This document shows, piece by piece, positions 8,381-49,219 of a stretch of DNA of 64,000 nucleotides. The number at the start of each line of letters is the position of its first letter. The first letter of the stretch is position 1. Position numbers and translations under genes: made by a program. The notes beneath the pieces are model-generated. The model was not told the DNA's origin. It was given only the letters and a program-made list of their open reading frames with translations, and did not search any database. Where the stretch lies: IMG/VR virus record IMGVR_UViG_3300033182_000980, positions 248,001 to 312,000 of that record; one strand, given 5' to 3'.

Positions 8381-9847
8381 TTAAAGACCGATAGAAGCGT
8401 TAAAGACTTGATAGACGATTGTGATAACCCTTTGAGCATTTGCAGTATTGGTCACATCTAGTCCGACTGTGAAAGCGTTGCCACCTACATTGATTGCTTT
8501 GAGATGTGGGGCGACAGCAACTGTGATGTCACCTGGGTTATCGACAACACTTAGAGTAAGCATGACAAGAGCTTGGTTAGATAAAGCACCTGCTAAACCA
8601 TTGTCGTTAATGACGACCTCATTAAGACCTACGAGTGCCCCGATTGTGAAGTTGGCTTTACCAACCCTCATGTCTGTGCTTCTAAGACTATTCCCAGCTA
8701 CATGGAGCAAGCCATCTGCATGGTCGGGGAACTTGATTTCTCCAGCTGTTGCACCATTGTGTCCGACACCAGCTTGAATGATGACATCACCACCTTGAAA
8801 GCCACCATTTCGACCAAAGCCACCTTCAATCGTGACATTACCACCATTACCCCTCGCACCCCCTGCGTTCTGCCAAGGTGAGCCACCTCTAAGAAGAATA
8901 GCACCCCCTGTTGAGTCAGCTGGGTTTAAGACTGTGCCACCATAGATGTTTACAGAGCCTCCCTCTTTATTTGATGCCCAACAGTATCCACCATAAATAG
9001 AGAGATCACCACCATTCTGAGTGCGAGAGCCACCCCCGCCTATATTAACACCACCACCATTACCTGTGCTGTTATCCCAAGCAATCCCACCATAAATACT
9101 TACCGAGCCACCTCTAGTCCCACCAGCGTTGGCATTACCCGCTTGGAAAGTAAACCCACCACCACTTGAAGCATTAGAAGCCCCGCCAGAAAAGTAGACC
9201 CCACCACCACCGTCTTGAGTGCTTGCACCACCAATGAAAGAAAAGCCACCACCATTACCTTGAGTGCCTGCCCCACCCCTCAGAGTAAAGCCACCACCTT
9301 GTCTCTCACCATTTCCTGCTGTGAAAGTGAAGTCTCCACCATCGGATTGGTTTGTGCCTCTACCAGCACCTGTGTAAACCTCAAAGCCACCACCGTCTCC
9401 ACCAAACTCACCACTATTTCCAGAGGTGAAAATGAAGTTAGCTCCATCAGTTCCTGCGAAGTCTACATTGTTTGAGTCAAAGCCTTGTCCTGATGTAAAT
9501 CTTACGACTGGAGCGTTTTCTCCCTCAACTGCATTGTCGGCAACCTCTTCAATGTTATTTGTCTCTTGGATATATCCGTCAATATAACCACGATCAATAT
9601 ACGATCTGATAGACCCATGATTGAACGAGTATTCCACTCTAGCGGTGTATTCTAGTTCAAAGGTATGCTCACCATTAGCGTAATAGGTAAAACTCGATCT
9701 AGGGGCAATAGAGCGTGTGTACTGACTTTGATCTAGCCCATCTGTGAGATCGTTGAAATAAAGGGTACTCCCCTCTGCCGAAAGCTCTTGGTTTGTGCGA
9801 GGGTCGATTGGACCTTTGCCTGTATGTGTTAAGACGAGTCTTGCCAT
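8381..9847 (-). CDS. Glycine-rich virion fibre-like protein
   Basis: Many GG(F/V)x(F/I/L)xxG repeats; late motif and AAGGAG RBS upstream. Confidence 0.6.
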   Translation of the reverse strand: MARLVLTHTGKGPIDPRTNQELSAEGSTLYFNDLTDGLDQSQYTRSIAPRSSFTYYANGEHTFELEYTARVEYSFNHGSIRSYIDRGYIDGYIQETNNIEEVADNAVEGENAPVVRFTSGQGFDSNNVDFAGTDGANFIFTSGNSGEFGGDGGGFEVYTGAGRGTNQSDGGDFTFTAGNGERQGGGFTLRGGAGTQGNGGGFSFIGGASTQDGGGGVYFSGGASNASSGGGFTFQAGNANAGGTRGGSVSIYGGIAWDNSTGNGGGVNIGGGGSRTQNGGDLSIYGGYCWASNKEGGSVNIYGGTVLNPADSTGGAILLRGGSPWQNAGGARGNGGNVTIEGGFGRNGGFQGGDVIIQAGVGHNGATAGEIKFPDHADGLLHVAGNSLRSTDMRVGKANFTIGALVGLNEVVINDNGLAGALSNQALVMLTLSVVDNPGDITVAVAPHLKAINVGGNAFTVGLDVTNTANAQRVITIVYQVFNASIGL

Positions 9848-9888
9848 GATATATCTCCTTTGTTTGTTTATTTACTTACAGAGGAGAT

Positions 9889-9900
9889 ATAAAGAAACTA
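9889..9900 (-). promoter_or_regulatory. Putative late promoter (TAGTTTCTTTAT)
   Basis: Matches the motif, 42 nt upstream of the ATG at 9847. Confidence 0.65.
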
Positions 9901-12660
9901 TTAGTGTCTTAAACCAATGTCCGAGAGTGTCTTGTCAACGAGCTTGCGAACCACTTCAAGATCATCTGTCTTTTTGACCACTCGACCATTGACCTCTACG
10001 ATTAAGTTTTTGTAGTCATAGCCCGATCCACTAGACTTGAAACCACTAATAGAAATCTTAGTGTTTGGGGCTTCAATCTTGATGACCCTCTCTCCTTTTC
10101 GGTCAAGTACACCAGTGACTTTGTGTTGCCCCTTCTTGAACATCCACTGTAGCTGTTTTTCAAATCGGCTGAGATCTTGCCACCCAATGTGGTTGCTAAG
10201 TAGTCCAAACAAGCGAGCTTCCATATAGCGAGAAGCGACTCGAATGGCTGGTAAGTCAGACATAAGGTTCTCTTTGACTTGCTCCTTGTCATAGATGATG
10301 CTTGGGTTTGAGAGATACATATTCCTTAGTTTTGAGGACACAGACATCATAAAGTCTTTCATCCCTCGACCAGAGAATCCTTGATTTCTTGCGAGAGTAG
10401 GCAACAAGCTACGATCTTTTAAAATGGAACTTGGGGATCTCAACGCTTCGACTAACTCTCTTTGTTCTTCTGGAGTCAGTTCAAGAGACAGTTCTTCCAT
10501 TCGCCTTAGTTGTTCACGACTAAGTGTGCCGAGATCATGTTGAAGGTTGAAGCCTCGATTCACGAGGTTGATGAAAAACATATAGGGTAGCTTTCTGCTG
10601 TGCGTAGATAAAGCCGCCCTAAATGATTTATGCTCTCTAGCTATCTCCACGAGAACTTCAATAACACCTAGTTTGTCGAGTGTAAGAAGTGCGTCTTTCC
10701 ATGTCTTGGACTTAAAGATATGGAGTAATTCTCGGTAGACACGATCTGGACTCTGATCCTTTAACTTGTGCTTGTTTCTCTTGATCGCTTGGGCTGTATC
10801 TTTGGGGATAGTCAGACCATATTTGACCACAAACTTAACTGCACGAATGATGCGTGTAGGATCTTTCGATAAGGTCTTATCAGCATCTAGGAAACACCTT
10901 GCTTCACCTGCTTCTAAATCCCTAATGCCGCATCCTGTCATGTCGATGATTTCTGCTTTATCTGGACCATCAGCTAAGTCAGATAGTCTCCACATAAGCA
11001 TATTAAATGTGTAGTCTCTGTTTGTTAGGGAGGTGTAGAGATTTGATCCTTCTAACTTCTCTTCTTCGGGGTATTCCTCAACATCTCTAATCTCGATAGC
11101 CGCATCACCATCTTTTGAGAACTCGCTAAGATCAACACCGTCTACGATCCACTCGGAGTTTACCCAAATGTGTGTGCCATACCAGTCAGTCATCACATGG
11201 GTCTGTGCGGGGATCATGTCTACAAGGTTATTAGCAACCCACTCGGCATCCCTTCCTAGATTTTCAGCGTCTACTACAACATCTACATCTTTCACAGGCA
11301 CATCAATCATAAAGTTGCGAATCGCACCACCTGCGACATAAATGTTTTCTGCCACTCCCCGACCCATAGATTTAGTTGCCCTTGAGAGCCACTTCATAAG
11401 GGCAGTTGAGTGAGCGTTTGAGACAGCTAGTTTCTTTCTTCTGGCCATTTTAGAAATCCTTCTCTTGATTAGATTTGGGTCATTTATGATTGATGGATCA
11501 GAGACATACATCTCTCTTAGTTGATCCATTTTGCGAGACATAAAATCTCTCATGTTCGACTTTCCGACACCCTTATGTCTAGCAAGGGTGGGGAGGAAAG
11601 ATTTGTCTTTAATTGCACCACCAGGAGACTTTATGTATTTAACAAGATCTCTCTGTTCCTCGTCCGTTAAGGCGAAGGCTTTTTCCTCTAGCCTAGCGAT
11701 CTGATTTCGATCTAAGACCGACAGGTCATGTCGAAGGGAGATACCTAAGTTGAGCATCCTAATGAAGAACCTATAGGGTAGCTTCTTCGCTTCTGTACTT
11801 AGTGCCGCTCTGAAGCTAGGTTCTTCTTCGGCTATGTCGGCAAGCACCTCAATCAGACCTAACTCTTCAAAGGTATCTAAAACGCTCTCCCATGTTCTCT
11901 CGGATAGGATGCCTCTAATCTCACCATAGATGCGGTTCGGGGGGACTTTGGTTAGAGCGTATCTCGTCTTTAGGATAGCCCTCTTAGTCTCATTAGGGAT
12001 GTTCAGACCATATTTGACTAGGAACTTAACAGCCCTAAGAATACGAGTAGGGTCATCATAGAATGTTTTTTCGGGGTCTAGTGGACACCTTGCTTCGCCT
12101 GCTTCTAAGTCAGCTAATCCACAGCCTGTCATATCTACGATTTCTGCTTGGTCTGGACCATCCGCTAAGTCAGCTAACCTCCACATAAGAGTGTTGAAGG
12201 TAAAGTCTCTACGATAGATGTCCTCTCGAATAGTGGATTTGGTGATCGAGGGTTTGTACCCACCCCCTGTGTCATCAGAGTAAGTCTCTGATCTAGCGTC
12301 CACGATCTCAATCGCCGCATCACCTTCTGCACTAAACTCACTAAGATCAAGACCGTCTACTATCCATTCAGACTTAACGAAGATCTTAGCTACACCATAC
12401 TGATCGCTCACAGTTTCAGTTCGAGCAGGAATCATGTCTGCCAGCTCGTCAGCGAGCCAAGCCGAGTTCTCCCCAAGAGCTATGGAGTCAAGCACAAGGT
12501 CTACATCTTTAACTGGCTTATTGAGCTTAAAGTTGCGTATAGCTCCACCTACTACATAAGTGTTTTCAGCAACATCTCTACCTAGTCTCTTGGTGGATCT
12601 TGAGAGCCACTTCATTAGAGCTACCGAGTGTTCATTAGATACCATTGCTGACTTAATCAT
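9901..12660 (-). CDS. Tandem-duplicated class II tRNA nucleotidyltransferase (CCA/poly(A) polymerase family), two catalytic units plus small C-terminal domain
   Basis: Two copies of GGAIRN...KDVD and DPTRI(L/I)RAVKF; unit 1 EDIYRRDFTFN, unit 2 TSLTNRDYTFN. Start moved to ATG 12660 (MIKSAM), which overlaps the upstream gene's end. Confidence 0.85.
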   Translation of the reverse strand: MIKSAMVSNEHSVALMKWLSRSTKRLGRDVAENTYVVGGAIRNFKLNKPVKDVDLVLDSIALGENSAWLADELADMIPARTETVSDQYGVAKIFVKSEWIVDGLDLSEFSAEGDAAIEIVDARSETYSDDTGGGYKPSITKSTIREDIYRRDFTFNTLMWRLADLADGPDQAEIVDMTGCGLADLEAGEARCPLDPEKTFYDDPTRILRAVKFLVKYGLNIPNETKRAILKTRYALTKVPPNRIYGEIRGILSERTWESVLDTFEELGLIEVLADIAEEEPSFRAALSTEAKKLPYRFFIRMLNLGISLRHDLSVLDRNQIARLEEKAFALTDEEQRDLVKYIKSPGGAIKDKSFLPTLARHKGVGKSNMRDFMSRKMDQLREMYVSDPSIINDPNLIKRRISKMARRKKLAVSNAHSTALMKWLSRATKSMGRGVAENIYVAGGAIRNFMIDVPVKDVDVVVDAENLGRDAEWVANNLVDMIPAQTHVMTDWYGTHIWVNSEWIVDGVDLSEFSKDGDAAIEIRDVEEYPEEEKLEGSNLYTSLTNRDYTFNMLMWRLSDLADGPDKAEIIDMTGCGIRDLEAGEARCFLDADKTLSKDPTRIIRAVKFVVKYGLTIPKDTAQAIKRNKHKLKDQSPDRVYRELLHIFKSKTWKDALLTLDKLGVIEVLVEIAREHKSFRAALSTHSRKLPYMFFINLVNRGFNLQHDLGTLSREQLRRMEELSLELTPEEQRELVEALRSPSSILKDRSLLPTLARNQGFSGRGMKDFMMSVSSKLRNMYLSNPSIIYDKEQVKENLMSDLPAIRVASRYMEARLFGLLSNHIGWQDLSRFEKQLQWMFKKGQHKVTGVLDRKGERVIKIEAPNTKISISGFKSSGSGYDYKNLIVEVNGRVVKKTDDLEVVRKLVDKTLSDIGLRH

Positions 12661-13228
12661 CTGACTTAACCTCTTCTGGTTCGGGTGTGGTTTCGACACC
12701 AAGTGATTTCTTAACCTTTGCTTTGAACATCTTGATAACGAACGCATTTAAAGCACCCGCACTCGCACCCATATAGACATCAATCATCATAAATGGCTTT
12801 GATAAGGTGACTGCAATACCCGCTCCTGTTAAAACAGCAACAAGTCGGATCACAGCGTCAGCCTTCTCTTTACAGGTTTTGAAGATGAAGGGCTTAATGA
12901 TCTGAGTGATCGCTAGGCTCAAGATAGCGGCGTTGACTACAAGATACACATGACCCATAAAGACATCATGTGTTTCACGACCTTCAGCTTTCCAAGGAAT
13001 ATACTCCATATACTGTGTGCAGGCTACACCCTCTTCGTATATTTTACATTCTTGGTTTTCTTCACCACATAGAAGATCATTACCCTCTATGATTTCGCAC
13101 AGCCTCGGTTCAGACTCCCCATCTTTATTCATGGTTTGACAGAGGATTGTATGAACATCAACAAACTGACAATGGTCTGGTAATGCGTGTAGTGGCTCTG
13201 CACTTATAGGTATGTTATGTTTAGCCAT
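12653..13228 (-). CDS. Membrane protein, holin-like C-terminal part
   Basis: Cys-rich N-terminus followed by about three hydrophobic segments and a charged tail; late motif upstream. Confidence 0.4.
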   Translation of the reverse strand: MAKHNIPISAEPLHALPDHCQFVDVHTILCQTMNKDGESEPRLCEIIEGNDLLCGEENQECKIYEEGVACTQYMEYIPWKAEGRETHDVFMGHVYLVVNAAILSLAITQIIKPFIFKTCKEKADAVIRLVAVLTGAGIAVTLSKPFMMIDVYMGASAGALNAFVIKMFKAKVKKSLGVETTPEPEEVKSDD

Positions 13229-13266
13229 GATTCACCTCGCTTCTTTTTATTTAATAAAGCAAGGCG

Positions 13267-13278
13267 ATAAACAAACTA
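13267..13278 (-). promoter_or_regulatory. Putative late promoter (TAGTTTGTTTAT)
   Basis: Identical 12-mer to the one upstream of the tail tube gene (49991). Confidence 0.7.
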
Positions 13279-13620
13279 TTAAGTGATAGAGATGCTATGG
13301 CTACTAGACTTAAACCTTCGAGCTAAAGAGTCCCACACCCTCAATGCGGACTCGCTCGTCTTACCCTCATAGAGATAGTCTGGTATAAACTGAAAGGGTT
13401 GCCCCTTGCTTTCAACCTTACCCTCTTTGACCACCTCAAGGTATAACCGAGTACCAATCCCTCGCCCTCTGTATTGGTCTTTAAGCTCACTTTCAAGCAA
13501 GACGAGGGTTTGGGTATTGGGTAAGTAAACAGCGTGAGCAAAACCTACCTCTACGCCCTTATCGAGAGCAAGGATATAGAACCGATCTCTTGTATCTGGC
13601 TCACGCTTAAAAGAAATCAC
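13279..13620 (-). CDS. GNAT-fold acetyltransferase-like protein (paralogue 3)
   Basis: YRGRGIGTRLY acetyl-CoA-binding motif A; shared FIPDY...TSESALRVW. Confidence 0.65.
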   Translation of the reverse strand: MISFKREPDTRDRFYILALDKGVEVGFAHAVYLPNTQTLVLLESELKDQYRGRGIGTRLYLEVVKEGKVESKGQPFQFIPDYLYEGKTSESALRVWDSLARRFKSSSHSISIT

Positions 13621-14156
13621 AGGTGGGGCATCTTATCTATGACGATGACATCACCCTCCGAGTGATACTTCTTAGCAAATGATTTCCATACCCTTAGAGC
13701 CTTATCCGAGGTAGACCTATTGTGGCAGTAGTTAGGCATGAACAACAAAGGCAATCTACCATGTTCAAGCCACGCTTCTTTGACTAACTCAACATACATT
13801 TGAACTCCACATCTCTGACCTTGTAGAGACTCATGGAGATAGGAACTAATAACTTCTACAACAAGAATAACTGGTTCATCTCCATCTTCATATCGAAGCA
13901 TTTCGTCCTCAAACCAATACTCTTCGGATAGCTTCTCAATGTCATCTGCACAGGCAAAATGACCTCTACCCATTTCTTCTAGTGTATAGAAAGCTACATG
14001 GGCTTCACAATGCCCCTTGTATTCACCATCAACTTGAAGCTCAACACCAAGATTAGCATTTCTATCGTCATAGTCAGTGGAGACATCAATGGTGATGTTG
14101 CCCTTTTGGTAATTGGCTTTCATGTAGCGACTAGCTACTCTTTCATAGGATTTCAT
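13617..14156 (-). CDS. GNAT-fold acetyltransferase-like protein (paralogue 2) with RVASRY leader
   Basis: LQGQRCGVQMY motif A; FMPNYC...TSDKALRVW; N-terminus MKSYERVASRYMKA. Confidence 0.6.
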   Translation of the reverse strand: MKSYERVASRYMKANYQKGNITIDVSTDYDDRNANLGVELQVDGEYKGHCEAHVAFYTLEEMGRGHFACADDIEKLSEEYWFEDEMLRYEDGDEPVILVVEVISSYLHESLQGQRCGVQMYVELVKEAWLEHGRLPLLFMPNYCHNRSTSDKALRVWKSFAKKYHSEGDVIVIDKMPHL

Positions 14157-14650
14157 CTTGTACTCCCATCATATACAATAACATCACCAGACGATGGGAG
14201 CTTACGAGACAGTGATTTCCAGACCCTTAAAGCGGAGTCTGATGTTTCGTCTTGAACACTCTCACAATAGTTAGGGATAAATAGAAAGGGTGCCTGAACC
14301 ATAGAGTAGGTGTGTTCCAGAAACTTTAGGTACATTTCTATTCCGTAGCCTTTACCTCTTGAAGACTTAGCGATCTTACTATCCTTAATAGAAACGATAT
14401 ATATTTTATCCCCTTTAACTAATTTTGGATAACGATCGATGAGTTTATACATATCCTCATAGCACAAATAAGTATCCCCAATGAATTCGGGTTCGATTTC
14501 GTCTTGTTTAACTTTTTCAATCCTACCACTAATGTTTCCTATCAAACTCCCACTGAGGTAGGCATAGCCTTTAGGGTTGCGAGAATGGTTGTTAAAGTTA
14601 AACACCATTTCACTAGCATATCTTAATGCGACTCTCTGATATGGCTTCAT
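14153..14650 (-). CDS. GNAT-fold acetyltransferase-like protein (paralogue 1) with RVALRY leader
   Basis: SRGKGYGIEMY motif A; FIPNYC...TSDSALRVW; N-terminus MKPYQRVALRYA. Confidence 0.6.
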   Translation of the reverse strand: MKPYQRVALRYASEMVFNFNNHSRNPKGYAYLSGSLIGNISGRIEKVKQDEIEPEFIGDTYLCYEDMYKLIDRYPKLVKGDKIYIVSIKDSKIAKSSRGKGYGIEMYLKFLEHTYSMVQAPFLFIPNYCESVQDETSDSALRVWKSLSRKLPSSGDVIVYDGSTR

Positions 14651-14686
14651 TTTTTGTACTCCTTTAATAAGTACAATAGGAGCATA

Positions 14687-14698
14687 ATAAACAATTTA
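14687..14698 (-). promoter_or_regulatory. Putative late promoter (TAAATTGTTTAT)
   Basis: Matches the motif, upstream of the GNAT triplet. Confidence 0.6.
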
Positions 14699-14705
14699 TT
14701 AAAGG

Positions 14706-15089
14706 ATGGATATTATGGGTGCTGGAGTAATGCTTTTATGCAATAACAAAACGCTAATACTTAAAAGAGCGAACTACAAACATGATCGCTTTTCAGGCTA
14801 TTGGAACTTTCCTGGTGGTCAAGGAGAGCCAAACGAAACGACTTATCAGACAGCCCTAAGAGAGACTGAAGAAGAGACAGGTATCAAACCCGATCAATAT
14901 AAAGTAGTAGACCATGTAGACGACAAGATTTACACGATGTATGTCGGGGTGTGTAAGGAAGAGATCGTGCCTGTCCTAGATCACGAGCATACAGAGTGGG
15001 AGTGGGTTGTCATCTCTAAGATCCCTAGCATGACTCGTGAGATGCACCCCAAGGATTGGCGAGGGTTCAAGAAGTATTATCGGCTTTAG
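14706..15089 (+). CDS. Nudix hydrolase
   Basis: Nudix box PGGQGEPNETTYQTALRETEEETG. Confidence 0.92.
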   Translation: MDIMGAGVMLLCNNKTLILKRANYKHDRFSGYWNFPGGQGEPNETTYQTALRETEEETGIKPDQYKVVDHVDDKIYTMYVGVCKEEIVPVLDHEHTEWEWVVISKIPSMTREMHPKDWRGFKKYYRL

Positions 15090-15092
15090 AAA

Positions 15093-16175
15093 TCACCACA
15101 CTTGGAAGTGAACCCCTAAAGACCAAGTGTTTGAACCGTCAGCACCGATAACCCAACCAAGACCTGGAGCTATGTTGAGGCTCTTACCCATAATGTAAGG
15201 ATGCCATGTACCCATCACCCCTAGATACTGATTGGACTCGGTTAGAGCAAAGTTAGCTCCTAAGCGATAATCGCCCTTAGCAAAGTTGATAAAGCTACCC
15301 CCAATAGACAACCCAAACTCACCACCTTGAAAGGTTGACCCTACAAGTAAGCTCGGCTCGAACATTCTAAGACCAAGACGAACCGAAGTTGCTGGTGTCG
15401 TTGGGATGTAGACGAGTTGTGAATCGAGGTTAGGGTCGCCTGCCATGAGGATACTTTCAAGACCCTCTAGGGGTACAAACTTCCCTTGCTCATCAGTGTA
15501 CCCTCCATATATGTGAATACCTTGGTTTTGAACAGCTCCAGAACCCAAACTATCACCCTCACCATAAGTGATAGCAACAACCTTAAATGCGAGGTTGAAG
15601 TCTATGTGGTTGTCTAGTTCAGCCCAAAGATTTCTACTCCGAAAGGTATATGCTGGCCTACCATTAAAACTAAAAGGAGATCGCCAACTAAACTCAAATG
15701 GCTCACATCTTTCGGGGTGGTCGGAACACCTGTGCCTATCCTCCCTAGAAACACCAGGCCAACTCTGAGGTGGTGCAGGTGTTGGTTCTCTGCCACTTCT
15801 AAGGGATGAGATACCTCTGTTAAGTTTGCCCTCCATACGAACAAATCTTTGACTGATAGCTCTTATCTCTGCACCTGTCTCGGATTTGAAATCGCTTATG
15901 GCTTGCTGTGTTCTTTGGTCAAGACCGCTGATGATCGCATTCGCTCTTTGTTCAAGAGTGACTCGGTCAACCATATGAGACTGAACTGTACCTAGAGTGG
16001 TTTCAATCGCAGAAATCTTCTGTGCGTTCTCGGACAAGATGCCCTTCATTTGATTTTGGATCGTATCGTTCATTCTTTGCATCTTGTAGACAGACCAAGC
16101 GTTGCCTCCTACAGAAATCAAGAACAGGCTCAAGAGTGCGTAAGCTCCATATTTGATGTTCGCCAACTCAATCAT
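15093..16175 (-). CDS. Membrane-anchored coiled-coil protein with C-terminal beta-barrel-like region (spanin-like candidate)
   Basis: N-terminal TM segment (YALLSLFLISVGGNAW), coiled coil, amphipathic beta strands ending SLGVHFQVW. Confidence 0.45.
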   Translation of the reverse strand: MIELANIKYGAYALLSLFLISVGGNAWSVYKMQRMNDTIQNQMKGILSENAQKISAIETTLGTVQSHMVDRVTLEQRANAIISGLDQRTQQAISDFKSETGAEIRAISQRFVRMEGKLNRGISSLRSGREPTPAPPQSWPGVSREDRHRCSDHPERCEPFEFSWRSPFSFNGRPAYTFRSRNLWAELDNHIDFNLAFKVVAITYGEGDSLGSGAVQNQGIHIYGGYTDEQGKFVPLEGLESILMAGDPNLDSQLVYIPTTPATSVRLGLRMFEPSLLVGSTFQGGEFGLSIGGSFINFAKGDYRLGANFALTESNQYLGVMGTWHPYIMGKSLNIAPGLGWVIGADGSNTWSLGVHFQVW

Positions 16176-17250: not shown

Positions 17251-17287
17251 ATGCGTGTGAGCATTTACTTATAAGGAGGTGCAACTG

Positions 17288-20020
17288 ATGTTTGCCGATA
17301 TGCTTGAGACATTAAGACGACCCGATATAAAGCCCAAGCTGTGGATGAAAGATTGCGAGCTGATCTTGGGTACGAAAGAAAACCTAGATCAGTGCATTGA
17401 TGAGTGTATCAACAGCGTTGCGTATGGGATTGACCTTGAGACAACAGGTCTTGATAATCGTGTGTTCAATGGACGCACACGAGATACGATTGTAGGGGTC
17501 TGCTTGTCAGCCCATAAGGATAAGGGGTACTACTTCCCTGTCGGTCATCAAGAGGGTGTAGAACATAACATCCCTTGGAGGTTGATGTATCCAGCTCTTG
17601 AGCGTCTGTTTGATCTCTCTGTGAAAGCAGAGCCTGTCTTTCACAACGCCGCTTTCGACCAAGAGTTCTTGGAGTTCAACGAGTACAAGTCGGGTCTTGG
17701 TGAGGAGCGTTGGGATTCGTTCAAGTGGCATGACACCTATATCATCCAGTATCTCTTGAACCCTCGTGAAAAGGGAGGTCGAGGACTCAAGCATTTAACG
17801 AATGTTCACCTTGAGCGTGAGATGATTGAGCTGTCTGATCTCATGCCCGATGCCCCCGACAAAAACTACTCTAAGCTCGATGTGAGCTGGGAGCCTTGTG
17901 TTTGGTATGCCGCTAGTGATGCGATGTGTACGCTTGGTCTTTGGGAAATCCTTTATAAGAAGTACACCGAGGCTAAAGAGCATACGCTCTCTATGTATGT
18001 GTTAGAGCGTATGTGTCTGCTCTCAACCCGATGGATGCACAGAAATCGTGTCTACATTGATCGGGACACAGCGTTAAAGTACAGCCAGCAAGGTCAGAAG
18101 TTATGGTTTGACTCTCTGATTGATGTCTATGACGGAGCAAAAGAAATCTTAGGTCGAGACATTACCCCTAACTATGTTCGAGTCCTTAAAGGCGAGTTGA
18201 AGGGCGAGAACAAGTTTAACCACATGGAAGTGGAGGGGATGAGCTATAAGACTCGTGTAGACGAAGCTCGTAAGGAAGCGACTCGTTTATATCCCGATGA
18301 AAAGGGAGTAGTCACTAAGGCTGTGAAGATCATCGGTAAGAGTGCAGGTACAGAGGAGATTGAGTTTCCTTTGACCTATGACATCTTATCCCCTCAAAAG
18401 CTCGGCTTGTTGTTTAGAGAGTTGAGTGTACCAGGTCTTAAGGCGAGTGAAAAGTCGGGGCAAGTCGTAACCTCTAAAGACATTCTTGAAGAGGTCATTG
18501 AGAAGGCATCTGATGACTTTCCATTCATGGCTAAGGTTAAGACCTTTCGTGAGCTTGGAAAGGCTATGGGTCAATACCTCATTCCCTTTGTAGAGGATGT
18601 CGGACAAGACGGTACTCTCAAGCCCAAGTTTGATCAGTTTGCCGCTGACACAGGACGCTTTTCATGTAAGACAAACAGCAAGCCTTGGAAGGTCAAAGAC
18701 GGTGGGTGTCGTGTACCATTTCAAGGTATACCAGCTACCTACGATCCGACTAAGCCCGAAGCTGTGGCTAAGATGCGTTCTTGCGTGGCAGTGCGTGATG
18801 ATGATTGGTGGTTAGCGGCCATTGACTATGCAGGTGTAGAGCTTCGGTTAGTCACAAACTTGAGTCTTGAGCCTAAGTGGATTAAGGCTTTCTTTGAGTG
18901 TTCCGAGTGTGGCACATCTTACCCACAAGAAATCCAAGAGGATGGGTTCGCCAAAGCACCTCCGTCTAACTGTACGAACTGTGGCTCTGATAAGATTGGC
19001 GACTTGCACACGATTACAGCGGTGGCGTTTTATGGTGAGAGTGCTAAGAAGCGTGATGATTGGAAGGCGTTGAGAGGTAATGGTAAGGGTTGCAACTTTG
19101 CTCTGTCTTACGGTGGTACAGGTAAGGCTGTTCAGCGTACCATTGGTTGTTCAGCCGAAGAAGCAGAGGAGAAGTTCAAGAAGTTCACCTCGACTTATAG
19201 TGAGCTGACGAAGTGGTGGTCTAAGCAACACAACTTTGGTCGTAAACATGGTTATGTCAAGACAGGTATGGGTCGTGTTCAGCCATTGCCCGACATCAAC
19301 TCTGATGATTTTAGGTTCAAATCCAAAGATGAGCGTAAGGCTGTTAATGGGCCAGTACAGGGTACGAGTGCAGATGTAACCAAGTTGGCGATGAGCTTCA
19401 TCTACCAAGAGACTAAGAAGCGTGGGTGGCAAGACAAGCTGATGATGATCTTGACCGTCCATGACGAAATCGTCTTTGAGATCCATAAGTCGATCTTGAA
19501 AGAGGCGATTGATATGATCTCCGAGATGATGACTCGCAACAAGGTGATTAAGCGTCTAGGTTGGCGTGTGCCTTTGCTTGTAGATGTTGAGCTTGGTAAG
19601 GATTGGACTGTTCCTTTTGATGTGAAAGATGTAATCGCAGGAGAAGCTGGCGACAAGATCATCAATGCCAAGTACAAGTGCAAGGATTGTGAGGAAAAGA
19701 CACCTCGTGATCCTAAGCCTACGGTTTGTATGCACTGTGGCTCTAGCAACATTAAGTGTGATTACACAGATGAGTTTATTGCCAAGATCAAGAAGCAGAC
19801 CGAACAGCTTTATGCAGACTATGGGGTGAATCCCGATGAGATTGTTAAAGAGGAAGAGGTACCCAATAAGGTTGAGGAAGCTCCCCCAAGCAAGCCTACT
19901 TTCATGCTAGAGTCTTTGACCGAAGATACTGCTAAAGAGCTTGCTGATTGGATTAAAAATCAAGATGGTGAGTATGATGTAGTATATCAAGGTCGTAGTA
20001 TAAATGCTTTACTAGATTGA
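17288..20020 (+). CDS. polA: Family A DNA polymerase with 3'-5' exonuclease domain
   Basis: Exo motifs IDLETTG, FHNAAFD, YAASDA; polymerase motifs AIDYAGVELR (A), RGNGKGCNFALSYGG (B), VHDEI (C); AGGAGGT RBS. Confidence 0.95.
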   Translation: MFADMLETLRRPDIKPKLWMKDCELILGTKENLDQCIDECINSVAYGIDLETTGLDNRVFNGRTRDTIVGVCLSAHKDKGYYFPVGHQEGVEHNIPWRLMYPALERLFDLSVKAEPVFHNAAFDQEFLEFNEYKSGLGEERWDSFKWHDTYIIQYLLNPREKGGRGLKHLTNVHLEREMIELSDLMPDAPDKNYSKLDVSWEPCVWYAASDAMCTLGLWEILYKKYTEAKEHTLSMYVLERMCLLSTRWMHRNRVYIDRDTALKYSQQGQKLWFDSLIDVYDGAKEILGRDITPNYVRVLKGELKGENKFNHMEVEGMSYKTRVDEARKEATRLYPDEKGVVTKAVKIIGKSAGTEEIEFPLTYDILSPQKLGLLFRELSVPGLKASEKSGQVVTSKDILEEVIEKASDDFPFMAKVKTFRELGKAMGQYLIPFVEDVGQDGTLKPKFDQFAADTGRFSCKTNSKPWKVKDGGCRVPFQGIPATYDPTKPEAVAKMRSCVAVRDDDWWLAAIDYAGVELRLVTNLSLEPKWIKAFFECSECGTSYPQEIQEDGFAKAPPSNCTNCGSDKIGDLHTITAVAFYGESAKKRDDWKALRGNGKGCNFALSYGGTGKAVQRTIGCSAEEAEEKFKKFTSTYSELTKWWSKQHNFGRKHGYVKTGMGRVQPLPDINSDDFRFKSKDERKAVNGPVQGTSADVTKLAMSFIYQETKKRGWQDKLMMILTVHDEIVFEIHKSILKEAIDMISEMMTRNKVIKRLGWRVPLLVDVELGKDWTVPFDVKDVIAGEAGDKIINAKYKCKDCEEKTPRDPKPTVCMHCGSSNIKCDYTDEFIAKIKKQTEQLYADYGVNPDEIVKEEEVPNKVEEAPPSKPTFMLESLTEDTAKELADWIKNQDGEYDVVYQGRSINALLD

Positions 20021-20028
20021 GGTTAAAT

Positions 20029-21255
20029 ATGTTTTTTGAGTATGAAAAAAAGAAGTACAACGGAATAGACGATTACACTTGGGTGAGTGGAGGTAAATTA
20101 TTCACACCTGCCCATGAGCTGTCCGAGATCAAATCAAAGTTTACAAGATATGAGATCATACTCAAAATCTGTCAGGTGATATATGACCACCAAATACCAT
20201 TCCCCTATAAAGAGCACAGCGTATCTAAAGCTAAAGGTGAGTTATCTAAGCTCTTTAATACACATTTCCCTGCTGATGAAAGAGAATGGTATTCAGACTT
20301 ATGCGAAGGCATCAAGTGCTTTAAATATAGGGGGGGCTATCTGCGGATAAAGACCAACCACACAGGCACTTATGTCTCTGACCTATTTTGTCATCGTACT
20401 CGATTAAAGGCACAAAAGAAAAGGTACGCTGATGATCGTCTAGGAATGGTAGGTCTTTGGGAGTATCTTTTATCTTACAGGTGCGAGGAGGAGTCTGATA
20501 TAAATACGGTCATGTATATGTTTATCAATGGTATCTTTCACTTTAGCGATAAGATTGACCATACAGCGGTTTACACTTCGGGGAGATTATCTATTGGTAC
20601 TGTAAGTCAATTTAAACCCGCTAGTGCTAAGGCTCTGTACGATTTATTTGGAGCTAAGAATGTACTCGACTTTTGTGCTGGATGGGGGGATAGGCTAGTA
20701 GGATTTCATGCATCCAATGCCGAAACATATATCGGAATTGACCCTAACTCTGATTTGCACCCTCAATATGAAAAGATACATGAGTTTTGTGGCACTGGAA
20801 AAGAAGCAAAGTTCATCTGTTTGCCCGCAGAAGATGTAGATTATTCAGAACTCCGATATGACTTTGTTTTCACATCTCCACCATACTTTGATCTGGAAAT
20901 ATACAATGGAGAAGAGACTCAATCCGTGAAAAGATACCCTAAGATCGACCATTGGTTAAAGGGGTTCTTGTTCAAATCTTTGAGTAAGATTTATGAGTAT
21001 CTAGAAGATGGTGGTAGAATAGCGGTCAATATATCAGACAGTCCAGCAGTGAACATTTTTGTTTGTGAGTCTATGCTAGAGCACATGGAGTCGATAGGTG
21101 CTACTTATGAGGGTACTATAGGTTATGGCCTTGCTCGTAGACCTACCGAGAGTGGGCATAATTATTTAAAAGAAAAGTCTGAGCCTATTTTTATTTGGTC
21201 TAAGGGTGTTGCTCCCGATCCAAATCGACAAACAGATAATTTTTTTGGAGTCTAG
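20029..21255 (+). CDS. DNA amino-methyltransferase (N4-C/N6-A type), paralogue 1
   Basis: LDFCAGWGDR (motif I), YIGIDPN, FTSPPYF (motif IV); start at MFFEYE. Confidence 0.85.
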   Translation: MFFEYEKKKYNGIDDYTWVSGGKLFTPAHELSEIKSKFTRYEIILKICQVIYDHQIPFPYKEHSVSKAKGELSKLFNTHFPADEREWYSDLCEGIKCFKYRGGYLRIKTNHTGTYVSDLFCHRTRLKAQKKRYADDRLGMVGLWEYLLSYRCEEESDINTVMYMFINGIFHFSDKIDHTAVYTSGRLSIGTVSQFKPASAKALYDLFGAKNVLDFCAGWGDRLVGFHASNAETYIGIDPNSDLHPQYEKIHEFCGTGKEAKFICLPAEDVDYSELRYDFVFTSPPYFDLEIYNGEETQSVKRYPKIDHWLKGFLFKSLSKIYEYLEDGGRIAVNISDSPAVNIFVCESMLEHMESIGATYEGTIGYGLARRPTESGHNYLKEKSEPIFIWSKGVAPDPNRQTDNFFGV

Positions 21256-23122: not shown

Positions 23123-24366
23123 TAGTGGGCCAGAGACATATATCGGGAAGCAACCCTTGAAGCGGCTCGTGCCATTTGTAGGTTATCTACGAGATCGGGA
23201 TTTCTTTTAATGTCTTTCATTTTAAGGAAATCACCTTGCATAGTCTTTACGAACATATCCTTTTCCGAGGTGAGGTTATTAACTTCTTTAACGACATGGT
23301 TTTCAACTTTCTTTCCTCCAAACCATGACTTCCAGACCTTACCAAACTTCTTTGCCATTTTCTTAGCGAGAACTGATTTGAGTACGCCTGCTAAAGCACC
23401 TTTTGTGAGTAAGGTATAGATAATGCCACCACCAAGAACAGCAGAGACTACTTTTGTTCCTAATAAAGTCGCTAGGATAATTTTGAACCCTGCGTAGGCG
23501 GCCCCAACAAGCAAAGCACCTGTACCAGCGGCAAACGCTTTCATTGTGCCACCTTCACCGTCACCCATTACTTGCTTCCAAGTGTCTTTCATAGCTGGTA
23601 TCAAAGATAGTGGGTTCAAGAGGGCGTTAAGCTCTTTGAGGATTGCTCCGACAACTTTCACACCCATCTCTTTCTGGACGATTTCTTGAGCAGACTGCTT
23701 GATGCTTTTCATGGCTGAATCTGGCATCTTCATTCTTCTAGGGTCTGCCTTTTTCCCACGCTGTTCTTCTAATGACTTTTGTACTCTTGGGTCTGGATTT
23801 TTGATTAACTCGTCATAGTACATCCAGCCCTCTAAATAAGAGTCAAAGTGGAACGCAAATACCTCATTGGTGAATGGGCTACTAAAGTCTTGAGTGTTCC
23901 GATCTTCATCTGTTTGAAACCATCCACTTATAAGCTCACCTGTGTTATAATCCTTATCTTGATCGGTGTCCCACTTAAACTTTCTTTCAACACACCCTTG
24001 CCACCAAGACCAGTAGTTGCCTTCAGCGACTTTACCTATGATGGATTTTTGCAGACCTTCGGTCATCAGATCTACAAAGGGAGTGTCTACAATAAACTTT
24101 TGTAGGAGTTCATAGAAGGTCTTTACAAACTTCTCTTTCAACCCTTTGACCCACGCAAGACCCGTATTGATTGTGTTTGAAATCCAGTTCTTGATCTTAC
24201 CAAAGAAGCCTGTTTTTTGGTACTCAAGCTGTGCGACTCTAAGCTGTAAGAGTGCAATCTTGACCATTTGAGGTTCATCCACCATAGGTAAGCGACTTGC
24301 TCTTTTAGTCCTGTAGTGAGCTTGGAAAACATCTGGGTCTGCGAGTAGATCAAAAGCGTATTTCAT
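23122..24366 (-). CDS. Probable virion-packaged protein with long hydrophobic Gly/Ala segment and C-terminal RVASRY tag
   Basis: Ends ARAASRVASRYMSLAH; hydrophobic AFAAGTGALLVGAAYAG...VLGGGIIYTLL; late motif TAGACTATTTAT at 24406-24417. Confidence 0.55.
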   Translation of the reverse strand: MKYAFDLLADPDVFQAHYRTKRASRLPMVDEPQMVKIALLQLRVAQLEYQKTGFFGKIKNWISNTINTGLAWVKGLKEKFVKTFYELLQKFIVDTPFVDLMTEGLQKSIIGKVAEGNYWSWWQGCVERKFKWDTDQDKDYNTGELISGWFQTDEDRNTQDFSSPFTNEVFAFHFDSYLEGWMYYDELIKNPDPRVQKSLEEQRGKKADPRRMKMPDSAMKSIKQSAQEIVQKEMGVKVVGAILKELNALLNPLSLIPAMKDTWKQVMGDGEGGTMKAFAAGTGALLVGAAYAGFKIILATLLGTKVVSAVLGGGIIYTLLTKGALAGVLKSVLAKKMAKKFGKVWKSWFGGKKVENHVVKEVNNLTSEKDMFVKTMQGDFLKMKDIKRNPDLVDNLQMARAASRVASRYMSLAH

Positions 24367-28198: not shown

Positions 28199-28238
28199 AT
28201 CTTGTCACATAGCGATTATATGACGAAGGAATAATACC

Positions 28239-28689
28239 ATGAGAAATCATAACAAGATGGCAAGTCGGGTCGCATATCGCTACATGAAGCAAGCTGGACT
28301 TTTGAGCAAGATTGTAAACTTCTTCTCGGAGTCTCCTCGTGAGAAAGCAAAGAAGCCAGTTTACGATGTCGCTAAGTTTTGGGTGACCGCAGGGATGTAT
28401 GGCACGACTATGGGAGAGGTTTCTAGGGAGCTAAAAACTCAAAGGCAAAGACACAGCGATTATTGATGTCAATGGTCGTAAAGTTAAGCTCTCTCTTGAG
28501 ATGGATCGTGTTAAGATGAAAGATGACGGAGGCATCAAAGGCAACATCTTCGTTGCGATTTCTCTTACAGGGGTAGACGAGAATGTTCCTAAGAGGGATC
28601 TTGAAAAGATGCTTATGCAGATTGTGAAAGAGACTCGTCTTAGGAATGTGTTTACCTCAACCCCTGTGGAACACCCAAGGATGGGCTAG
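28239..28689 (+). pseudogene. RVAYRY-tagged gene split by a +1 frameshift in an A5 run (28433-28437); sequencing error, pseudogene or programmed shift
   Basis: Removing one A joins 28239..28466 and 28501..28689 into a 149-aa ORF (...SRELKLKGKDTAIIDVNGRKVKLSLEMDRV...). Confidence 0.6.
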
Positions 28690-34883: not shown

Positions 34884-36059
34884 TTAAAAGAAATAATCAT
34901 CCCTAACCCATTTAGGTTCGGATGTTAAACCCTTACTCCAAATAAAGATCGGCTCACAAGTTGGGAGGTCTGTTTTCTGACCTCCTCGCTCGGACATACG
35001 ATAGCCAATCACACCCTCATAGGTCGCTCCTAAGTTTCTCATGTGTTCAAGCATCGGTGTGCAGATGTCCTCACCTTTTTTATCTGCGATGTTGATTGCT
35101 ATCCTACCACCCTCTTTAAGTACCGACCAGCATTTAGTGAGGGTAGCGAGTAAGAAATCGTTGACCCAATCTTTAAGATCTGGATAACGCTTCCACGATT
35201 GAGTCTCCTCTTGGCTGTACCTCTCGATGTCGAAGTAAGGTGGACTCGTAAATACAAAGTCCACCTTAACATCAGATAGATCAGCATCCTCTGCTGGAGA
35301 GCAAATAAATCGAGTGGTCTTACCTGTATCGCAGAGATTGACGATTTGCTGGTAAGGCTCATGAAGGTTCGTATTAGGATCAATCCCGATATAAGACTCC
35401 GCGTTCGAGGCAAGGAAACCGACAAGCCTATCGCCCCACCCTGCCGAGAAATCTAAGACACTTTTGGCTTGGAACAGATCGTAGAGAGCTTTAGCTGATT
35501 CGGCTTTAAACTGACTTGCCATATATGTGTGCATCTTTAAGGCTCTTCTAAGGGTTTGCTTATTGACTCCACCTCTCTCATAGATGTCTCTCTCACAAAT
35601 GCCAAAGAAGCATCTTAAGAATGAGTTGCTTTTACTGGCATTGACCCACTCATCATAGGGTGAGTTTCCTTGAGTTCGATAGCTACATTTCATCCTCTGT
35701 GATTGGGTAAACAGATTAGAGACAGCCTTACCTTTGTAGTAGCTGTTAAGGTAAACATATTTACCTTGATAGGTTGTGTCTAGGGGTGTAGCTTGGCGAG
35801 GTGCGATCCATTCTTCAAATACGAATGGATCTTCCTTTGCTTTAAGATCATTAAAGTCGTTTATTGCCTGTCCTACTGTGTACTCGGAGTAGGGGTAAGG
35901 CAAAGACTCAATGATGGGTGCGATGTGATCTTTGATCTGTTCCTTAGTGTATGTCTCACGAAGCATACTCCACTCATTAGGGAGTATGTGAATATATCCG
36001 TCTTTGATATACTCAATGTCATCTAGCGACTTGAGTGTGGTTTTATAGTCAAAGTACAT
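34884..36059 (-). CDS. DNA amino-methyltransferase paralogue 2
   Basis: LDFSAGWGDR, FTSPPYF, EPIFIWSKG. Confidence 0.85.
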   Translation of the reverse strand: MYFDYKTTLKSLDDIEYIKDGYIHILPNEWSMLRETYTKEQIKDHIAPIIESLPYPYSEYTVGQAINDFNDLKAKEDPFVFEEWIAPRQATPLDTTYQGKYVYLNSYYKGKAVSNLFTQSQRMKCSYRTQGNSPYDEWVNASKSNSFLRCFFGICERDIYERGGVNKQTLRRALKMHTYMASQFKAESAKALYDLFQAKSVLDFSAGWGDRLVGFLASNAESYIGIDPNTNLHEPYQQIVNLCDTGKTTRFICSPAEDADLSDVKVDFVFTSPPYFDIERYSQEETQSWKRYPDLKDWVNDFLLATLTKCWSVLKEGGRIAINIADKKGEDICTPMLEHMRNLGATYEGVIGYRMSERGGQKTDLPTCEPIFIWSKGLTSEPKWVRDDYFF

Positions 36060-36893
36060 TTAAGCACCTAAATTCCAGAATAGGGTTTTCCCTTTTAACT
36101 TGTATGGATTTTCAGTGATCCACTCCCATGCTTTTTTATCCCAGAGTTTGTTGCAAGGGAATGGGGTTGTGAAGTGATCCATCTCATCGTAGAAATCGTA
36201 CTCGGACTTATAAATCTTGAGGCAAGATGGGACACTTCCTAGATTAGAGATCAGAGCCTTCTCTATAGTCTTAACGCTAGAGGTAGCAACGATTACAATC
36301 TTCTTCCCTTCAAAGTCTGGCTCAAACATAACACCAGCGATGTAGTCAACACCTAAGAACCCTTTAATCAGCCCAACACTTGTAATGCCACTACCCCCTT
36401 CAATGACTAGTGTGTTGTATTCATTCCGAGAGAAGAACTCTTTAGAACGCTCTGTCCAATAGTTGATGTAGACAGGGTGGTTGAACGCATCTGGACACAT
36501 CTGCCAATCGTTTTGAGAAGCTATTTTCTTTGTCTGCGAGGACAAGATAGCTACCATGTTGTGCTTTAAGGGGATCAACTCTCCACCATATAACTCGACC
36601 TTTTTCAGCATCTCTTGAGAGTACGCTTTTGTGTTCGGGTAAGCTATTTTGATGTCATAGCCTAGCTCTTTGCCCCAATAAGCTAACGCCCACCCTGTGT
36701 ACGATCCTCTGACTGTGAGGTGTACAATGGGTTTATCTTTTGTGAAGTAGTCCGAGGCGAGAAGTCTCCTTATGCCTTCAAGTTTCGCCCAAGGGGGGAG
36801 ATCGAGGGAGCCGTTGAGTAGATCATCTCTTTTGACATCGACATTTTTGTGTTTGACTTTGTATGTTTCTACTGGAGTATCAAAGTTTAACAT
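36060..36893 (-). CDS. PLP-dependent fold-type II enzyme (ACC deaminase/D-cysteine desulfhydrase/TrpB-like superfamily)
   Basis: VKRDDLL...WAKLEG (candidate Schiff-base Lys), GSYTGWALA, GGSGITSVG, LFWNLG; start at MLNFDTP. Confidence 0.75.
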   Translation of the reverse strand: MLNFDTPVETYKVKHKNVDVKRDDLLNGSLDLPPWAKLEGIRRLLASDYFTKDKPIVHLTVRGSYTGWALAYWGKELGYDIKIAYPNTKAYSQEMLKKVELYGGELIPLKHNMVAILSSQTKKIASQNDWQMCPDAFNHPVYINYWTERSKEFFSRNEYNTLVIEGGSGITSVGLIKGFLGVDYIAGVMFEPDFEGKKIVIVATSSVKTIEKALISNLGSVPSCLKIYKSEYDFYDEMDHFTTPFPCNKLWDKKAWEWITENPYKLKGKTLFWNLGA

Positions 36894-37791
36894 TGAACAT
36901 CGCCTTTTCTTCAAACTCTATGTCTTTGAGTATTTGGTTGTATATCGCTCTAGTGTCTTTATATGAAGTCCCTGCTAATAAGACTCTTCTGTGTAAGCCC
37001 TTTAAGCCTCCACTTTTCCCTGTGGTGTGGAAGTTGGATCTGTTCGTTTTGTGTTTATCAAAGTATTCTTTATGCGTATGTTCGGTAATGAACCATTTGG
37101 GCTGGATCTTATTACTAGCTGGATTGAGCAGTAGCTGATCCCACAGTAGAGATTTACACAAGGACTCTATTCGGGGTGTGCGAAATGGACACAACACTTC
37201 AATACCCTTACTTTTTAAGAACTGTCTTATCACCCACAGGTTGTGAGGGCTTCCAGAAGGGTACTTTTCTTCTAGCTCTTTCTCGACTAAGTTTTTGAAA
37301 TAGTTATCTAGGGCAACCCTAGACCCTCCTTTTTTGTATGCTCCCCAAAGGCTGTTAACTTTCGCTCCGCTGTGAGCAAACATCGTAGTGTAAAACCCTG
37401 TGATCAGATAGGGTGTGGTCATTTGATTTCTCATGTAAGAATAAGCATGACAAACCTGTGTCTCTATATTCCTCGTTGTGCGTGTGGTCTTAATGACTTC
37501 CTTAACTTCCCTTAACAAGTCATCTCGAATAGGGTCAGAGGGGATGGTAGCCACTTTCAAGGGTAGGTCATAATGCTTTGCTATTTGTTGAGCATACTCA
37601 AGGTCTTTGGAATACTCGCCCTCAATCTCAAAGGTGATCAGCTCTTTTGGCGGCCTTCTTAGCTCTATCATTGTGAACAATAGCATGGAAGAATCTATCC
37701 CACCAGAAAACGAGAGACTAATGTCTTGGGGTAGGTTTCTTACCGAGTCATAGATTGCTTCTTTAAATTCCTGTACCCATGTGTGTGTCAT
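36880..37791 (-). CDS. Asparagine synthetase-like PP-loop ATP pyrophosphatase (synthetase domain only)
   Basis: LSFSGGIDSS PP-loop; DLEYAQQIAKHY, LITG, EVLCPF; no glutaminase domain. Confidence 0.75.
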   Translation of the reverse strand: MTHTWVQEFKEAIYDSVRNLPQDISLSFSGGIDSSMLLFTMIELRRPPKELITFEIEGEYSKDLEYAQQIAKHYDLPLKVATIPSDPIRDDLLREVKEVIKTTRTTRNIETQVCHAYSYMRNQMTTPYLITGFYTTMFAHSGAKVNSLWGAYKKGGSRVALDNYFKNLVEKELEEKYPSGSPHNLWVIRQFLKSKGIEVLCPFRTPRIESLCKSLLWDQLLLNPASNKIQPKWFITEHTHKEYFDKHKTNRSNFHTTGKSGGLKGLHRRVLLAGTSYKDTRAIYNQILKDIEFEEKAMFNVKL

Positions 37792-38470: not shown

Positions 38471-38473
38471 ATT

Positions 38474-39679: not shown

Positions 39680-39708
39680 ACTTAAATCCTTTCAAGATAC
39701 TTATAGGA

Positions 39709-40872: not shown

Positions 40873-40875
40873 AGC

Positions 40876-45137: not shown

Positions 45138-45187
45138 AGTCTTGCTGACCTCCTTTGGTTATTCATTATATGAATAAGGAGGCAACT

Positions 45188-46354: not shown

Positions 46355-46355
46355 A

Positions 46356-49172: not shown

Positions 49173-49219
49173 ATAAGTGAACCCTCCTTTGGGTGTGGGA
49201 TGTACTTATATGATTTTAC

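Follow-up and report, generated by a model that had tools for sequence, protein, structure and literature searches.

Three overlapping GNAT genes of a huge uncultured phage, two with a peptide shared by polyvalent-type enzyme modules, as candidate injected cargo

Injected phage proteins decide the first minutes of infection and are known for only a handful of model phages. Alt and the internal proteins of phage T4 are unrelated enzymes that carry an N-terminal capsid-targeting peptide of about ten residues. According to PMC5512222, Alt is a packaged ADP-ribosyltransferase injected with the DNA, and there Iyer, Burroughs, Anand, de Souza and Aravind (2017) argued that the GNAT and ADP-ribosyltransferase (ART) domains of polyvalent proteins are packaged and injected. 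The polyvalent GNATs covered there are either solo or placed in giant multi-enzyme proteins beside ART domains and are encoded with head genes; one of the two GNAT families described comes from an uncultured marine phage with an adjoining ART domain. Rac of phiKMV, a phage GNAT cited in PMC7824862, acetylates the alpha subunit of host RNA polymerase. Here we analyse three consecutive genes, A, B and C, in a 64,000-nucleotide stretch (the window) of virus record IMGVR_UViG_3300033182_000980. All three add to a phage-specific GNAT family that is tied to polyvalent proteins and has been little described, and two of them bear a short peptide, RVAxRY, that may mark them as cargo.

The window covers bases 248001-312000 of the record, which is 375,691 bp long with a CheckV completeness estimate of 100% and a GC content of 45%; coordinates without a prefix are window positions, and those prefixed "genome" count along the whole record. 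The closest deposited relative is an uncultured 485-kb phage (DNA polymerase identity 45%), and DNA near-identical to the genome is present in seawater, marine and wetland metagenomes. The genes and their main elements are as follows:

14153-14650, minus strand: gene A, a full-length GNAT-family paralogue of 165 amino acids (aa) with an N-terminal tag; open reading frame (ORF) with the Shine-Dalgarno sequence AAGGAG 8 nt upstream
14618-14635, minus strand: RVALRY tag of A, residues 6-11
14342-14359, minus strand: motif A of gene A, RGKGYG, residues 98-103, canonical
13617-14156, minus strand: gene B, a GNAT fold of 179 aa with an N-terminal tag; called from the ORF, an AlphaFold2 (AF2) model and homologues
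14124-14141, minus strand: RVASRY tag of B, residues 6-11
13806-13823, minus strand: motif A of gene B, QGQRCG, residues 112-117, a non-canonical coenzyme A (CoA) loop
13279-13620, minus strand: gene C, a minimal untagged GNAT of 113 aa whose GTG start overlaps the stop of B; called from the ORF, Pfam and AF2
13453-13470, minus strand: motif A of gene C, RGRGIG, residues 51-56, canonical

The overlaps A/B and B/C measure 4 nt each (ATGA and GTGA), and BLASTP identifies the products as true paralogues (A-B 3e-20 over the full length, B-C 3e-16, A-C 3e-13). An earlier note, made from the sequence by a model, had described three overlap-coupled paralogous genes, and its account proved exact in coordinates and overlaps. 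The sequence GGAGTACAA stands upstream of both A and B in copies 496 nt apart; the duplication unit therefore took in the ribosome-binding site. We rejected a frameshift fusion of B and C: relatives again show the 4-nt overlap and two distinct gene calls, and some have arrays with only B or only C. A search of Rfam with both strands of 12500-15300 gave no match, and plus-strand ORFs across the array are at most 85 aa long and without support. Two 151-nt marine metatranscriptome contigs are identical to gene B (0 mismatches), which records presence in an RNA library, not timing.

Motif A is present in all three proteins, as are the segments F(I/M)P(D/N)Y and TSxxALRVW, the latter corresponding to GNAT motif B. 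These features, and the divergent N-halves that had been described with them, were all found, C lacking about 65 residues. A and C conform to the GNAT motif Q/R-x-x-G-x-G/A; B carries Arg at the fourth position, which is Gly in 133/159 family domains and Arg or Lys in aligned B homologues. Both the tag and the loop [QRH]G[QKH][RK]CG are kept among B homologues (n=33, 32 of them at 52-94% identity). Gene C reaches 25.2 bits with Pfam Acetyltransf_1 against a cut-off of 20.7 and has a weak Acetyltransf_CG match too, genes A and B have no Pfam match even at E 10, and PHROGs held no usable match for A, B or C.

AF2 models of B and C had predicted local distance difference test scores of 82 and 90. 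Aligned to GCN5 with VIA-align, C gave Z 12.0 (102/113 residues, root mean square deviation 2.5) and B gave Z 10.5 (104 residues, 2.8). The leading matches listed for both models in Foldseek PDB, VIA-align, BFVD and ESM Atlas were all GNATs, bar one BFVD row (inositol oxygenase); the Foldseek check suggested in the earlier note thus favoured the GNAT fold it had assigned. Gene A is a predicted GNAT, a call supported by full-length homology to B and a canonical motif A, the fold having been checked for B and C. The complete GNAT fold of B includes a helix, bearing C69, that is inserted between beta-3 and beta-4. C has neither the tag nor this Cys-helix insert and has Leu at the second Cys of the family; its orthologues are 71-96% identical, and C-type proteins have lost the C69 helix and carry Leu at 144. 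Complex prediction for B (residues 18-179) with C scored 0.00, weighing neither for nor against binding.

To define the family we built a profile from A, B, C and their orthologues and searched it against 1.84 billion cluster representatives; it found at least 337 in metagenomes at E<=1e-3, of which 110 reach E<=1e-10. Gene A itself matches the profile at 1.4e-48 (hmmsearch). The family is nearly confined to phage and metagenome sequences. It was not found in 50,697 GenBank phage records by tblastn with A, B and a 143-aa paralogue as single queries, blastn of the region against the same records gave no match, and the profile found nothing significant among PDB sequences (best YjdJ, E 0.82). 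Five members are encoded in this genome, namely A, B, C, the C-terminal domain of a 631-aa protein and the 143-aa copy:

genome 208560-208991: 143-aa GNAT paralogue adjoining a C39-like peptidase gene; Acetyltransf_1 22.3, above the cut-off

Among the best 151 family domains, 81 are solo proteins of up to 220 aa and 30 lie in proteins of more than 600 aa. These giants also carry topoisomerase IB (Topoisom_I), ART-PolyVal, HAD_SAK_1, PolyA_pol (CCA-type), 2',5'-RNA-ligase-type (2H) and extra GNAT domains; by the usage of Iyer et al. (2017) they count as polyvalent proteins. The polyvalent architecture is thus a property of the family, A, B and C themselves being solo versions. In an alignment of 159 domains (the best 151 and the genome's own copies, numbered as in B) the near-invariant positions are G48, C69, D72, L76, R/Q112-G-x-G115-x-G117, Y121, P136, F139, P141, C144, T149-S150, A153-x-R-V-W157-x-S-L and G168. 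C69 is kept in 136/141 domains, and C144, at the end of strand beta-5, in 148/156. Such a pair of cysteines is unusual for GNATs and, speculatively, may have a catalytic role.

The N-termini of A and B read MK[PS]Y[QE]RVAxRY, so that two of the three GNATs do bear the tag ascribed to them beforehand (RVALRY in A and RVASRY in B). R6, V7, A8 and Y11 are invariant in 19 aligned B homologues. A six-frame translation of the genome contains 9 copies of strict RVAxRY; long ORFs account for 8, and called genes hold 7 copies against 0.05 expected from composition. Tag codons vary synonymously between copies, and therefore selection acts on the peptide, which is also kept in ART-PolyVal orthologues. 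No description of an RVAxRY peptide was found in the searchable literature of 8.4 million papers or in the searched parts of PMC5512222, where the text searched had no match for "N-terminal motif" or "linker" and no recurring inter-module peptide. Besides A and B, the carriers are:

N-terminus, MMKPYQRVANRYM: ART-PolyVal ADP-ribosyltransferase
N-terminus: HAD_SAK_1 phosphatase
10225-10242, minus strand: RVASRY in a tandem CCA-type enzyme, before its last ~107 residues
23122-24366, minus strand: 414-aa protein with the tag (23140-23157) at its extreme C-terminus, ...SRVASRYMSLAH; an M3-like site (see below) of 13.8 bits upstream
28224-28466, plus strand: small ORF with the tag (28266-28283) near its N-terminus (...MASRVAYRYM)
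two proteins of 1171 aa and 526 aa
a very basic 424-aa protein with two copies
a 70-aa ORF

Other arrangements around the peptide were seen. The ART-PolyVal gene (genome 15198-16274, L007) has, right after the tag, a module of ~85 residues common to RimI-like GNATs of other contigs (proteins P0201-P0206). Some of the latter end in a C-terminal tag after a conserved DPDLQG...GDPDLSRR stretch; an ORF that lies upstream of the tagged gene for the 1171-aa protein (genome ~57.1 kb) terminates in this stretch too.

Within the giants a peptide of the form [RK][VIL][AS]x[RK][YFWH] stands before each module. Giant P0115 has it at residues 855, 895, 1084, 1665 and 1983, with HAD, GNAT-like and topoisomerase modules at 926-1064, 1360-1498 and 1697-1896. 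The topoisomerase module of the giants is preceded by tags of the type RVAAKYQKKK; the solo 476-aa topoisomerase IB of this genome (genome 62231-62863; L024 985-2415; Topoisom_I 7e-14) has no recognisable tag.

The position of the peptide in smaller relatives follows the portal gene. In contig L027 (47.6 kb, 59% GC) terminase and portal genes are followed by a 2H-like protein, a 106-aa protein, PolyA_pol, HAD_SAK and a 2143-aa giant comprising ART-PolyVal, GNAT-like and topoisomerase IB modules, and then, with five genes in between, by the major head protein. L028, from a 137-kb contig, has terminase, portal, a 202-aa protein, an 1831-aa giant and a 1217-aa protein. In both, the peptide is confined to genes after the portal and never occurs in terminase, portal, capsid or other genes; in L006, where no portal gene was identified, it is confined to the giant itself. 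Portal and major head protein of the present genome belong to the families seen in these smaller relatives: phrog_16240 for the portal (genome 75305-76981) and phrog_2522 for the head protein (genome 48887-49765). The major-head match (genome 48902-49816, minus strand) spans one TAG and one TAA, the called ORF being 48887-49765, and probably overruns the ORF ends.

Behind the phage's own portal stand the 631-aa protein and then the 424-aa basic double-tag protein (genome 69426-76981, L026), with two small opposite-strand genes inserted among the post-portal genes. The 631-aa protein consists of a region with an HELVH motif, a low-complexity linker, a tag and a GNAT-like domain. Its N-terminal 250 residues gave leads to zincin-type peptidases and LPD23 (scores <0.9, template modelling score (TM) <0.5); on its motif it is an HExxH-containing protein, not a proven peptidase. 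The C-terminus of the 424-aa protein is extremely basic and rich in Lys and Arg, a feature to be expected in an internal head protein that associates with DNA. Encoding next to head or portal genes thus holds for the homologues in L027 and L028 and for the 631-aa paralogue, not for the triplet. As for T4-type cargo, one terminal peptide is shared by unrelated proteins, here GNAT, ART-PolyVal, HAD_SAK_1, CCA-type and basic proteins.

The most economical reading of this combined context is that RVAxRY would be a cargo signal, and A and B probably reach the host as cargo along with the DNA. That reading is supported because the same domains and peptide occur in post-portal giants of phages of the same portal and head families. 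More tentatively, and with rather less than even confidence, we propose that RVAxR[YWF][LM] is a portable signal, for head targeting and/or proteolytic processing, of a lineage sharing this portal and major-head family. In small genomes it would punctuate giant post-portal polyvalent proteins, and in this phage the modules (three tagged GNATs, ART, HAD phosphatase, CCA-adding enzyme and more) would be dispersed as separate genes keeping the peptide. The injected, tagged acetyltransferases put forward in the earlier note are accordingly backed by comparative context (the post-portal tag, the giants and the 631-aa paralogue), the weak part of the proposal being its late-promoter premise, taken up below.

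With a probability of roughly 0.5, we propose that A, B and C form a translationally coupled array of GNAT acyl-CoA-dependent N-acyltransferases, of which A and B would be loaded into the head via the tag and act on a host macromolecule on entry. The peptide would target proteins to the head interior, mark a processing site, or both, labelling in this way the post-portal enzyme modules (GNAT, ART, HAD phosphatase, CCA-adding enzyme and topoisomerase IB). Loading of A and B into the capsid would happen late; having entered the cell together with the DNA, they would transfer an acyl group to an amino group of a host macromolecule as soon as infection begins. C would act as newly made protein or as a partner. 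The likeliest acceptor would be a host protein, followed by aminoacyl-tRNA or RNA; given the neighbouring tagged CCA-adding enzyme and NUDIX gene, aminoacyl-tRNA is about as good a fit as host proteins, and phage DNA, also named in the earlier note, finds no support as acceptor. Different targets for the three GNATs are plausible, judging from their divergent N-halves.

Three upstream motif classes are over-represented genome-wide; sites in the window include the following:

17158 and 17228, minus strand; 31118 and 31764, plus strand: M1, GTAACCCCTTATCTATA, 65 copies in the genome, mostly before small genes
17242, plus strand: M2, aTCATATAAc, 55 copies, including one before the DNA polymerase
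2498, minus strand: M3, TTgTAGTTTATTTAT, 23 exact cores and 59 genes at 11 bits or more; class defined as TT.aTAGTTTATtTAT 44-126 nt upstream of a start codon
14681-14703, minus strand: weak M3-like site TTTAATAAATTGTTTATTATGCT, beginning 53 nt before the ATG of A

Together M1, M2 and M3 resemble a temporal promoter set; M1, which is often followed by a GC-rich hairpin, clusters at genome 334-363 kb. M3 stands before the operon with the major head protein and also before a 2084-aa tail-like gene, a lysozyme/hub-like gene and three tagged genes, which makes a late role for it plausible. In the genome, Pfam models for sheath and terminase and PHROG terminases gave no match; which class is late was therefore assessed by the major-head operon and the tail-like genes alone. 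The earlier note had placed the array under a late promoter, which is at best weakly supported: within the 55-nt gap ahead of A (14651-14705) there is no copy of M1, M2 or M3, just the M3-like site matching 9/12 of the core TAGTTTATTTAT and scoring 7.2 bits with the position weight matrix, between the 95th (3.7 bits) and 99th (8.4 bits) background percentiles. A scan of 9700-15200 for sigma-70 promoters and terminators returned no more than shuffled sequences did, with no sigma-70-like site upstream of A on its strand.

The array is flanked by genes that recur beside it in relatives:

14706-15089, plus strand: divergent NUDIX hydrolase gene (Pfam NUDIX 1.1e-18), syntenic with the array in L001, L004, L005 and L029
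12653-13228, minus strand: 191-aa protein with two hydrophobic segments, directly downstream of the array and conserved behind it in relatives
9901-12747, minus strand: tandem-duplicated CCA-adding/poly(A) polymerase-type enzyme of 948 aa, two genes downstream (PolyA_pol and PolyA_pol_RNAbd, twice)

The NUDIX gene, the hydrophobic protein (185-191 aa) and the CCA-type enzyme stay syntenic in most relatives. The CCA-type enzyme has a C-terminal domain of ~107 residues behind its tag, and relatives have a 734-aa version and further copies (L029). Array content varies: this window has A-B-C, L004 and L005 have B-C, and L001 has just C; a 369.5-kb genome has A'-B and lacks C, and a 296.6-kb genome has B alone, the B-type gene lying there beside tail-fibre-like genes (PA14, Laminin_G_3, Mtd_N). 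Relatives retain the 4-nt overlaps. In three DNA runs, the contigs of related strains break off at 14147-14156 and start again at 14613-14628, positions that coincide exactly with the borders of gene A, which is therefore absent or replaced in those strains. Judged from these contigs, gene A is a presence/absence or replacement polymorphism in natural populations.

Elsewhere in the window, five paralogous proteins of ~390-430 aa (34884-46480, minus strand) match the methyltransferase PHROGs phrog_67, 498 and 12517, with a DnaB-like helicase interleaved among them; one more methylase-type gene occupies 20017-21255. The family A DNA polymerase (17279-20020, plus strand, 913 aa) has a C-terminal HypA-like zinc-ribbon match at residues 794-833.

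Several observations weigh against injected cargo. A recognisable tag stands within 120 residues upstream in only 29/151 family domains, C is untagged and in one relative the sole copy, the CoA loop of B has Arg/Lys at the canonical Gly, and the promoter match to the presumed late class is marginal. The triplet itself lies outside the head module, in a region of replication and nucleotide metabolism (DNA polymerase, methylases, helicases, NUDIX), and a peptide serving as a hub-binding tag inside the infected cell would explain the distribution almost as well. Although rather unlikely, a strong alternative as regards the substrate, and perhaps the role of the tag, is that the genes encode cytoplasmic RNA- or tRNA-directed enzymes of an RNA-repair or translation-takeover module, with RVAxRY docking them to a hub (ribosome, tRNA or phage scaffold) and the GNATs acetylating aminoacyl-tRNA, tRNA or an RNA-linked amine beside the CCA-adding enzyme, NUDIX and HAD_SAK. 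The tagged tandem CCA-adding enzyme on the same strand and the conserved divergent NUDIX gene point in this direction, as do family fusions to PolyA_pol, 2',5'-RNA-ligase-type and HAD_SAK_1 ("Swiss Army Knife RNA repair") domains and the presence of gene B in a metatranscriptome; the genomic link of the array with tRNA 3'-end enzymes suggests tRNA-linked substrates. Foldseek ranked AtaT, TacT and KacT as the top PDB matches of B (E 2e-4 to 5e-3). VIA-align does not uphold this, GCN5, EctA, RimI and Nat enzymes tying at Z 9-10.5, nor does an antitoxin-like gene adjoin the array, and on both grounds we rejected an identity of B with AtaT/TacT. A cytoplasmic hub does not predict the confinement of the peptide to post-portal genes or the giant in L027, L028 and L006, and ART-PolyVal and topoisomerase IB are not RNA-repair enzymes. 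An action on tRNA is compatible with packaging, as injected cargo could still act there.

We regard it as very unlikely that A, B and C are ordinary metabolic or small-molecule GNATs (for polyamines, antibiotics or amino acids) or Mom-like DNA-base acyltransferases that chance duplication multiplied, with the peptide a family-specific structural extension free of any signalling role. The fold does not reveal the substrate of a GNAT, and the structural neighbours include EctA and aminoglycoside and streptothricin acetyltransferases; set against this are the occurrence of the peptide on unrelated folds (ART, HAD, nucleotidyltransferase, basic protein), at C-termini and at module junctions, the near-confinement of the family to phage and metagenome sequences and polyvalent architectures, and the lack of a Mom-type or restriction endonuclease partner. 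That one or more copies are non-catalytic, B or C being a regulatory or structural partner of a catalytic paralogue in a hetero-oligomer behind the overlap coupling, seems to us improbable. The R/K of B at the canonical Gly of Q/RxxGxG/A is kept in aligned B homologues, C lacks both C69 and C144, and the overlaps persist in relatives, all of which would suit such a role; conversely, many contigs maintain both the B and the C variant, at 52-96% identity and with their other motifs unbroken, C has a canonical loop and exceeds the Pfam GNAT threshold, and arrays occur in which B or C stands alone.

Should the peptide prove to be a cargo signal, sequence alone would suffice to list the enzymes injected by an uncultured marine huge-phage clade and its smaller relatives, and a "polyvalent protein" could exist in dispersed form. 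With its five copies, variable arrays and invariant Cys pair, the family is a candidate for a new host-takeover or counter-defence activity directed at host proteins or aminoacyl-tRNA.

Among described systems, the likeness to Rac lies in a phage-encoded solo GNAT and in a putative host-protein takeover; Rac, however, is made early and not packaged. TacT, AtaT and KacT resemble B as its best Foldseek PDB matches, with a TM of ~0.45, yet are not top in VIA-align and belong with an antitoxin gene that is missing here. C is similar in size to the minimal GNATs E. coli YjdJ (5i0c) and Arabidopsis At1g77540 (1xmt/2q4y), with 89 residues aligned at Z 9.6-9.8 and no alpha1-alpha2 arm; it is not of the YjdJ family, being derived from the longer A/B type with which it shares FIPxY...TSxxALRVW. 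Compared with the T4 capsid-targeting sequence, the RVAxRY tag is similar only in a chance-level start, MK.YQ, and, unlike the T4 signal, it is also found at C-termini and between the modules of giants, its cargo role being putative. A further parallel is with the polyvalent GNATs as portrayed in PMC5512222, through co-occurrence with ART-PolyVal and, in homologues, a position behind the portal gene. Unlike the polyvalent proteins described there, the giants found here are built on topoisomerase IB, HAD_SAK and CCA-type modules, and in this genome the modules are dispersed.

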